The position numbers and the translations under genes were made by a program. Below the pieces are notes generated by a model, which saw only the letters and a list, made by a program, of their open reading frames with translations, searched no databases and was not told the origin of the DNA. From contig JBLDXI010000032.1 of assembly GCA_047495785.1 (NCBI GenBank), positions 372,001-436,000 of the forward strand: 64,000 nucleotides of DNA, given 5' to 3'. The first letter of the stretch is position 1, and the number at the start of each line of letters is the position of its first letter. This stretch comes from Lepidodermella squamata (taxonomy: Eukaryota; Animalia; Gastrotricha). Below are positions 13,067-14,985 of this stretch, in pieces.

Positions 13067-14985
13067 ATGTCGGCCACTCCTACTCCACGTGCTGCCGGTG
13101 CAAAGGCTCGAGGCGGGTCGCATAAAACGCCGATTTCGCGGTCGAAGCGAGCTGGAGTTTGCTTCCCAGTTGGGAGATTCCATCGCTATTTCCGCCAGAC
13201 TTTGAAAAAGACAAGAATTTCGTACGGCGCGCCGGTTTACACCGCCGCTGTTATCGAGTACCTGACCGCTGAAATCATGGAATTGGCCGGAAATGCGGCT
13301 CGTGACCTCAAAAAGACCCGCATCACCCCTCGGCACATCCTGCTAGCTGTTGCTAACGACGATGAGCTGTCGAAATTGCTAGATCACGTCACCATTCCAG
13401 GCGGTGGTGTCATTCCGAAAATTCAGCCGTTCATCGCGAAAAAATCCTTGCCACAGCTTAAGGCGCAGATTGGAGCTGGCTCTAGCAATGCGTCAGCCCC
13501 AACTCCTGTGGTTTCACCGATTCAGGTTAAGAAGAAGGCAGCCCCTGCCCCGAAACGGGCGGCAAGTCCTGTTATTGCGAAGAAGGCCCCGGCGAAAAAG
13601 GCAGCCCCCGCTGCGCCGAAGGGAGGCAAGAAGGGCGGTCGTAAGGCAGCTGCGGATGATGAGGCGAGCAACGCTGATTCTAATGAGGGCGAAACCGCGA
13701 CGTCATCCAAGCCGCAGTTGACGATTCTTTCCGAGAAGAAGTTGATTGCTGGCCAAAAATTGACCGTGGTGCAATCCGATATTACCCAGTTGTCTGTCGA
13801 CGCCATTGTTAACCCTACCAATGCGTCCTTCAACCTCTCCGGGGAAGTCGGTAAGTCTTCATTTTGAATTATTTAAGGAGGAGTTTTTTTTAATTGATGC
13901 GATTTTTCAGCTACTGCTTTGACAAAAGCGGGCGGGAAAGACTTTGAAAACGACGTGAAAGATTTGGCCGCTAAGCACGGTTCGCTCCAACCAACGCAAG
14001 GTATGTTTCTCATCTAGTGAAAAAATGCTTGAGAAAGCTAGTTAAGCTTGCAATTAGCTAGTCCTGGCTGTTGAGTTTTTGTGGATATGTGTGATTTTCT
14101 AACTTTTATACTTGAATTATCACTTCCACTTGCGTTGTGTGTAAACTTGATTCGTTTGATTTCAATCTATTTTCAAGCCACCATTTCGGCTGCGAGCTTT
14201 GCGGCTTGCAAATTTGTAATACACGCCAACGTCATTCCGGCGACCAACACCGACGATCTCGAACGTGCTGTTCACAACATTCTTGTCCAGGCCGATAAGG
14301 TCGAACTGCGGTCGATTGCCCTGACCGCCCTAGGCACCGGCAGGTAGGAGGAACACAGCTAAAATAATCGAAAAAATTAAGGTGGAGATGTGTGCTTTGC
14401 AATTTTGTTCACTTCGCAATTTCCCACTGAGTTTCTAACAAGACGATCTAATTTTTTGATGTGGTGCGTTACGTTCGACCAGGACTAGGAGCATACGCTT
14501 AGAAATACGCGCGCTTGCTTAAAATTTTCGCATTAAATTGATGATTGAAATGATAGCCGCTGCGGTTGCTGTCAGCCAGTCTGAGATAGCAGCCAAGTTT
14601 GTCATGTGTTGCAATGGGCCGACGTGGGCTCGGGCCGCCGAAACAACCACGGCCGTGGATGATCTCAGCGCTACGGTTAAAAATTGCCTGCGAGGGGCAG
14701 ATCGGTTGAACCTTGTGTCGATTGCATTCCCATCTATTGGATCGGGCCGGTAAAAATTGAAAAACTCCACCTTAATTTTTATAAATTATTTATTTTCGTT
14801 TTAATATTTTTTGATGTTTTTTCAGTGGTGGTTTTCCGAAGCAAACTGCAGCGCAAACAATTTTACACGCCATAAAGGACTATTTCGCGTCCGCCATTGG
14901 ATCTAGCATTAAGCAAGTCTATTTCGTGTTGTGGGACATGGAGTCGGTGGGCGTTTATGCCTCCGAACTGGCCAAGCTCGAATGA
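13067..14985 (+). CDS. MACROH2A: Core histone macroH2A (H2A fold + basic linker + macrodomain) with mutually exclusive exons 3A/3B
   Basis: Exons 13067-13850, 13911-14000, [14178-14343 OR 14557-14749], 14826-14985. [45 protein letters not shown]2A fold; Lys/Ala/Pro linker; macrodomain [48 protein letters not shown]. Confidence 0.95.

Follow-up and report, generated by a model that had tools for sequence, protein, structure and literature searches.

A macroH2A histone gene lies on the forward (+) strand at positions 13067-14985 of the 64-kb window, by which we mean the whole stretch of gastrotrich DNA that was analyzed. The gene consists of five exons with AG/GT at all borders. Exon 1 encodes an H2A histone fold, a basic linker, and the initial part of the macrodomain, including a single copy of the segment QSDI...NPTN...GEV that is alternative in vertebrates. 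Its product matches the Pfam families Histone (E 2e-12) and Histone_H2A_C (E 2e-10), the spliced open reading frames run in the same frame from a K/A/P-rich linker into the macrodomain, and the top named matches of the gene product are macroH2A proteins. An H2A fold with its docking segment, a basic linker, and a C-terminal macrodomain are the hallmarks of this histone variant, and all of them are found here. Support for the individual features comes in part from assembled contigs of three public runs (X1, X2, and X4) and from the nearest relative found, L001, which is a syntenic and distant 16-kb scaffold from an ENA metagenome. The exons are as follows.

13067..13850, + strand: macroH2A exon 1 (ATG and donor read; Pfam Histone and Histone_H2A_C; 13850>13911 junction in run X1)
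13911..14000, + strand: macroH2A exon 2, constitutive (ends in phase 1; spliced to 3A and to 3B in transcript contigs)
14178..14343, + strand: alternative exon 3A, 166 nt, the divergent upstream copy with an ALTALGTG loop (junctions, Pfam Macro, copy in L001)
14557..14749, + strand: alternative exon 3B, 193 nt, the canonical downstream copy with an AFPSIGSG loop (junctions, exon depth, Pfam Macro)
14826..14985, + strand: last coding exon, constitutive, GGFPKQ...AKLE and the stop codon (gene model; 92% identity to L001)

The first-pass annotation had placed two homologous exons with intact AG/GT sites and identical phases at these positions, and re-reading of the sequence agrees. With a slash marking the border, the donor of exon 2 at 14000 reads G/GTATGT, exon 3A is flanked by AG/CC...AG/GTAGG, and exon 3B by AG/CC...CG/GTAAA. 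Use of 3A alone yields an open product of 399 amino acids and use of 3B alone one of 408, while joining 3A to 3B, or omitting both, shifts the frame and leads to early stops, just as had been proposed. Across the species compared, the copies of this exon are all 3n+1 nt long (166, 193, 190, and 175 nt), so double inclusion or double skipping breaks the frame and brings in early stop codons. We read exons 3A and 3B as a pair of mutually exclusive exons in a real macroH2A gene.

Other loci in the window provide some genomic context. Immediately upstream (12698-13067) is a PDZ/arfaptin gene, similar to PICK1, for which a poly(A) loose end in run X1 falls at 13037, leaving 30 nt to the ATG of macroH2A at 13067. 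The spacing of the two genes is tight and operon-like, and the gene order recurs in L001, where the upstream neighbor also encodes PDZ and arfaptin domains. A 20-letter loose end before position 13042 resembles a diverged second allele more than it does a spliced leader. On the reverse strand, positions 9166-10626 hold an intronless gene for an ALG11 mannosyltransferase of 486 amino acids, whose nearest relative is a metagenome protein with 58% identity. Because its named relatives all show 40% identity or less (Rotaria, 36%), the gene points to a lineage that has no annotated proteome in the database. Rfam models match the window at one place only, a tRNA gene on the forward strand at 63670-63742 (67 bits).

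Homology, expression, and conservation of exons 3A and 3B

The peptides encoded by 3A and 3B are 45% identical across 33 amino acids (E 2e-8), and each exon by itself exceeds the Pfam Macro cutoff of 22 bits (3A, 26.3 bits; 3B, 41.3 bits). The profile positions matched by the two exons correspond (49-105 and 45-105), and among solved structures (PDB) both find their best match in one and the same part of the macroH2A1 macrodomain. Scores against human macroH2A1 are 20 bits for 3A and 39 bits for 3B, which makes 3A far more diverged from the canonical exon. No third copy of the exon is present within the 64-kb window. We conclude that 3A and 3B arose by tandem duplication of an ancient exon whose product spans the central macrodomain, starting with strand beta5 and reaching the G-x-G loop that binds the diphosphate (human residues ~257-315). 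The difference of 9 residues by which 3A had been described as the shorter copy is real, but it stems in part from an excess in 3B of ~4 residues over the usual exon, with a deficit in 3A of ~3.

Transcripts bear out the use of both exons. Run X1, which contains 57% of the sampled words of a 2.1-kb stretch, is cDNA-like, given an exon depth of 190-900, an intron depth of 3-6, and the poly(A) loose end at the 3′ end of the gene upstream of macroH2A. Every predicted junction is present in this run at its GT..AG border, including 13850>13911. The junctions of 3A occur at depths of 311 (14000>14178) and 297 (14343>14826), and those of 3B at depths of 186 (14000>14557) and 187 (14749>14826), matching a depth of ~190 for the 3B exon itself. 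All four are the junctions by which the first-pass annotation proposed that the exon pair be checked. Run X2 adds one contig of 359 nt that joins exon 2, 3A, and the last exon, and run X4 one contig that joins 3A to the last exon. Junctions of 3A therefore occur in three runs, each from a different study, and are covered at least as deeply as those of 3B; junctions of 3B come from run X1 only, where the shorter side measures 25 and 30 letters. Both isoforms are expressed, with similar contig depth, in contigs from which rare forms have been dropped and the isoform ratio is not readable. The same limit applies to the finding that neither a 3A>3B joint (14343>14557) nor a joint of exon 2 to the last exon (14000>14826) occurs in the contigs, since assembly drops rare forms.

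Two further observations were made on these runs. A low-depth contig of run X1 (depth 6) joins opposite strands at 14447/14554 within the intron between 3A and 3B, and probably arose when the assembly folded back on unspliced RNA or on DNA. In addition, a second version of part of exon 1 (13303-13522) is present both in DNA run X3 and in cDNA run X1. It carries 15 differences, 14 of them at third codon positions, which indicates two expressed alleles or copies that are both under purifying selection.

Comparison with L001 reveals whether the two exons have been retained over a long period. Both have counterparts there that are open, bordered by AG/GT, and equal in phase, namely 3A′ at 2763-2928 (166 nt) and 3B′ at 3155-3344 (190 nt). 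Synonymous sites between the window and L001 are saturated (pS 0.67-0.86) and the introns are unalignable. Nevertheless, 3A and 3A′ retain 76% identity, with pN 0.153 against pS 0.673 and an omega of ~0.1, and 3B and 3B′ differ with pN 0.257 and pS 0.764. For reference, pN is 0.16 in the N-terminal part of the macrodomain and 0.062 in the last exon, which is 92% identical. The lower pN of 3A (0.153 versus 0.257) means that this exon is constrained at least as much as 3B. This pattern indicates, at the level of sequence comparison, that purifying selection maintains both exons, and it answers the earlier call to seek both exons in a relative and to look for selection on 3A.

The strong divergence of 3A from the canonical exon (20 versus 39 bits to human macroH2A1) is what might be expected if 3A were a dead or decaying duplicate, or a source of splicing noise. 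This reading carries almost no weight against the evidence above. Junctions of 3A recur in three studies at a depth not below that of 3B, and in L001 the exon is open with intact splice sites at a distance where synonymous sites are saturated. Also, in the low-depth contig of run X2, which derives from a related strain or species, 3A shows 0 differences in 167 nt compared to 5 in the 192 nt of flanking exons. Given that the exons of L001 are open and low in pN while synonymous sites are saturated and introns unalignable, a dead exon is ruled out by the combination of expression and purifying selection. The X2 contig may moreover reflect synonymous constraint on 3A, as would be predicted if the exon carries signals for the control of splicing.

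Intronic pairing and its possible role in mutually exclusive splicing

The introns that follow 3A and 3B contain the two arms of a perfect inverted repeat.

14372..14387, + strand: 5′ arm of the 16-nt perfect intronic inverted repeat, 29-44 nt 3′ of the 3A donor
14765..14780, + strand: 3′ arm of the 16-nt perfect intronic inverted repeat, 16-31 nt 3′ of the 3B donor

A perfect complement of 16 nt was reached by none of 400 shuffles, and the whole window holds only two exact copies of the 16-mer, which are the two arms themselves. The resulting helix is part of both the minimum free energy and the centroid folds of the region 14344-14825. The 90 nt that open the intron downstream of 3A pair with the intron after 3B more strongly than shuffled sequences do, both in the window (z -4.7) and in L001 (z -3.6, p 0.007). 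A perfect helix is not present in L001, where the best candidate is an AT-rich pairing of 24 nt at 75%.

We propose that the 16-bp helix would loop out 3B and draw the donor of 3A near the acceptor of the last exon, such that the 3A isoform is favored. When the helix is open, 3B would be favored instead. Any mRNAs that are mis-spliced to contain both exons or neither would presumably be removed by nonsense-mediated decay.

Mutually exclusive exons under the control of competing intronic RNA pairings are known from Drosophila, where they include exon 6 of Dscam1 and the exons of 14-3-3 zeta and srp. The arrangement in the gastrotrich gene is similar in that complementary intron segments bracket an alternative exon and are predicted to be able to loop it out. 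However, unlike the clusters of the Dscam1 type, only one pairing is significant here, the one around 3B. A candidate docking/selector pair that would loop out 3A (14058-14067 with 14479-14488) was rejected because its 10-nt complement is at the level of chance, arising in 7% of shuffles. Likewise, pairing of intron 2 with the intron that separates 3A from 3B fails to reach significance in both the window and L001.

The ADP-ribose pocket of the two isoforms

MacroH2A links chromatin to NAD and ADP-ribose metabolism, and whether the vertebrate histone senses ADP-ribose depends on which isoform, 1.1 or 1.2, is chosen. Binding is lost in isoform 1.2 through changes at G223/G224. The gastrotrich gene resembles vertebrate MACROH2A1 in belonging to the same gene family, in its domain content, and in the choice of one of two tandem homologous exons. 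In both cases the choice falls on the ADP-ribose pocket, which the vertebrate exons remodel, but the gastrotrich pair is located in the other half of that pocket. Specifically, the vertebrate pair covers QVVQADI...HPTN...GGEVG (human ~198-227), whereas the gastrotrich pair covers ~257-315 and includes the loop G312-S-G314.

This separation is visible in those vertebrate gene models that run on through both members of the pair, as they contain the two alternative segments NLIHSEISNLAGFEVEAIINPTNAD and QVVQADI...HPTN... in succession. The corresponding segment of the gastrotrich gene (D203...G224) is single-copy and resides in exon 1. The assertion of the first-pass annotation that the vertebrate 1.1/1.2 pair covers an earlier segment, present only once here, is correct on both counts. 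As a side observation, the deposited models of five vertebrate proteins (P0030, P0032, P0067, P0089, and P0115) run through both exons and consequently have a partly doubled macrodomain, which is an error of annotation.

Alignment to rat macroH2A1.1 reveals that both gastrotrich isoforms keep the equivalents of D203, G224, G312, G314, and F348, and thus differ from vertebrate isoform 1.2 in retaining the known key residues. In human macroH2A1.1, the substitutions G224E and G314E abolish PAR binding (PMC5770377). Exon 3B is canonical across the diphosphate loop, and its isoform would have a pocket like that of macroH2A1.1. Exon 3A deviates from rat macroH2A1.1 at six loop positions (F308L, P309T, S310A, I311L, S313T, and R315S) and lacks the equivalents of S275-P276 after strand beta5. 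Its isoform would accordingly combine a retained glycine loop with changed flanks and a shortened beta5 loop.

The segment exchanged between 3A and 3B makes up half of the ligand pocket, and the two histones may differ in their affinity for ADP-ribose or in the surface presented to partners. Because both isoforms keep the known key residues, we only infer a difference in ADP-ribose binding. There is a substantial chance, somewhat short of even, that both isoforms bind ADP-ribose much alike and that the switch instead alters a protein-contact surface, the stability of the domain, or the tissue or stage of use. Retention of all five key residues in both isoforms favors equal binding, as does the distribution of exon types among animals. 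Namely, a version resembling 3A at diagnostic positions (A-like, see below) is the sole version in cnidarians, and a B-like version is the sole one in vertebrates, which indicates that both make workable macroH2A domains. Weighing against equal binding are the position of the diphosphate loop within the switched segment, the alteration in 3A of five residues that flank the glycines (those listed above except S313T), and the loss of the S275-P276 equivalents.

Vertebrates also have a second flavor of macroH2A whose loop is altered within this segment. The paralogue macroH2A2 does not bind ADP-ribose, and its loop is devoid of the G-x-G motif. That protein is the product of gene duplication rather than alternative splicing, however, and 3A differs from it in retaining G-x-G.

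Origin of the exon pair

The first-pass annotation held that this animal evolved its switch independently. The data do not bear this claim out as it stands, since tandem copies of this exon also occur in the annelid Paralvinella, the bivalve Tegillarca, and the nemertean Lineus, and in RefSeq isoforms of Pecten and Mya. Isoforms X1 and X2 of Pecten maximus and Mya arenaria in RefSeq differ in precisely the 3A/3B segment, and two copies of it are run together in the gene models of Tegillarca, Paralvinella, and Strigamia. The proteins from these last three models (P0121, P0122, and P0049, respectively) have a partly doubled macrodomain, an annotation error that exposes the tandem exons. In the genomic DNA of Paralvinella, the copies occupy 9138-9312 and 9379-9553, are 175 nt each, and are separated by an intron of 66 nt. 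The arrangement in the genomic DNA of Tegillarca and Lineus is the same. A single copy within the gene is found in a scorpion, Saccoglossus, Branchiostoma, and Nematostella.

In Paralvinella, Tegillarca, and Lineus the upstream (A) copy has the pattern VIHVN...KAVKNVL...A[ILV]PSI[SG]SG followed by N or K, and the downstream (B) copy has VIHCN...KTVKNCL...AFPSIGSG followed by R. The gastrotrich and spiralian pairs involve the same exon with the same borders, phase, and order, and in both a divergent copy is upstream of a copy with AFPSIGSGR. Stated by human residue number, the spiralian upstream copy shows V273/A290/V294 and lacks an arginine at 315, and the downstream copy shows C273/T290/C294/R315. 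There are also distinctions between the two pairs. The spiralian exons are both 175 nt and share ~62-78% identity with each other, in contrast to the gastrotrich exons of 166 and 193 nt, which are 45% identical over part of their length. Compared to the spiralian A copy, 3A has a deletion after beta5 and the ALTALGTG loop.

Five alignment columns discriminate the A and B types (human 273, 275, 290, 294, and 315). In exon 3B and its L001 counterpart, each of these columns is in the B state (C273, G275, T290, C294, and R315), and typing with hidden Markov models favors the B type for both by 22-25 bits. Exon 3A has an A-like state at four of the five columns (273, 290, 294, and 315) and the B state at none. 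Its typing by the models is ambiguous, with A/B differences of -2 and +2 bits. In direct comparison 3A is slightly closer to the A exon than to the B exon of Pecten, and 3B is closer to the B exon. These columns deserve some caution, as single-copy exons also fall into two sets, with those of cnidarians and Saccoglossus A-like and those of vertebrates and amphioxus B-like. For this reason, the five columns may be structurally coupled and able to shift together more than once.

Phylogenetic analysis gives a mixed picture. In a maximum-likelihood tree of 59 columns, 3A and its L001 counterpart sit on a very long branch beside the 3B pair (support 92/81) and not with the spiralian A exons. However, an approximately unbiased (AU) test does not reject a grouping of 3A with those A exons (delta lnL 1.0, p 0.45). 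The gastrotrich protein forms a long branch in the macroH2A tree as well. A search for further relatives that might bear on the long branch of 3A, in two metagenome scans, returned either nothing or only distant macroH2A cDNAs from other organisms, and a phmmer search with the 3A peptide, covering 1.8 billion representatives, returned multi-macrodomain proteins only. The tree tests do not separate a shared from a separate origin of the pair.

One can envision a duplication specific to the ancestor of the gastrotrich and L001, apart from the spiralian pair, after which the upstream copy diverged rapidly. We consider this a credible alternative, with roughly one chance in three of being right by our judgment. 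It would explain why the tree unites the 3A pair with the 3B pair and why a model of spiralian A exons has no preference for 3A. The duplication is also not universal, given the single copies in the scorpion, hemichordate, amphioxus, and cnidarian genes, and so may recur. Moreover, the borders of this exon are identical in all animals checked, from cnidarians to chordates, and any new duplication would look alike. Common borders are for that reason no evidence of a common duplication. On the other hand, the branches of 3A and 3B are long and the alignment is short, conditions prone to long-branch attraction, and the AU test leaves the grouping of 3A with spiralian A exons standing. The order of the copies is as in spiralians, the states at the discriminating columns agree with it for both exons, and each gastrotrich exon is nearer to the corresponding exon of Pecten.

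On these sequence grounds, we rate a shared origin with the spiralian A/B pair somewhat ahead of a separate one. The gastrotrich exons would then be the old pair of annelids, molluscs, and nemerteans, much diverged in a fast-evolving lineage. Taken whole, the explanation offered here, which comprises the exon pair together with the proposed steps of mRNA decay, helix formation, pocket remodeling, and descent from the old pair, appears to us likely to be correct.

The exon pair of annelids, molluscs, and nemerteans is already contained in public genome data, and the RefSeq pipeline lists the spiralian X1/X2 isoforms. In the searchable literature we found no description of an exon switch in an invertebrate macroH2A gene, including the spiralian pair; Guberovic (2021, 2023) and Rivera-Casas (2016) may mention it. 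Recent papers date the alternative exon of macroH2A to vertebrates. The authors of a 2025 survey of annelid histones retained a single transcript for each gene on the ground that protein-changing splicing is “rare in histone genes” (PMC12153100).

The central proposal of the first-pass annotation, a mutually exclusive pair of macrodomain exons in macroH2A, is upheld by the four junctions in transcript contigs and by selection on both exons, and the pair does lie apart from the site of the vertebrate pair. A broader view, which we advance tentatively and regard as possible rather than probable, is that the macroH2A of protostomes possesses an old exon switch of its own, dating at least to the ancestor of annelids, molluscs, and nemerteans. 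This switch would still be live in the gastrotrich, where it would toggle the diphosphate-binding half of the macrodomain between a cnidarian-like and a vertebrate-like form, with the choice made by an intronic helix that loops out one exon. Isoform control of ADP-ribose sensing by a histone would then have evolved twice in animals, through two separate exons of one domain. An expressed and selected second switch in the other half of the pocket in invertebrates would constitute convergent evolution, and exons 3A and 3B would supply a natural pair of macrodomains for dissecting the function of the loop.
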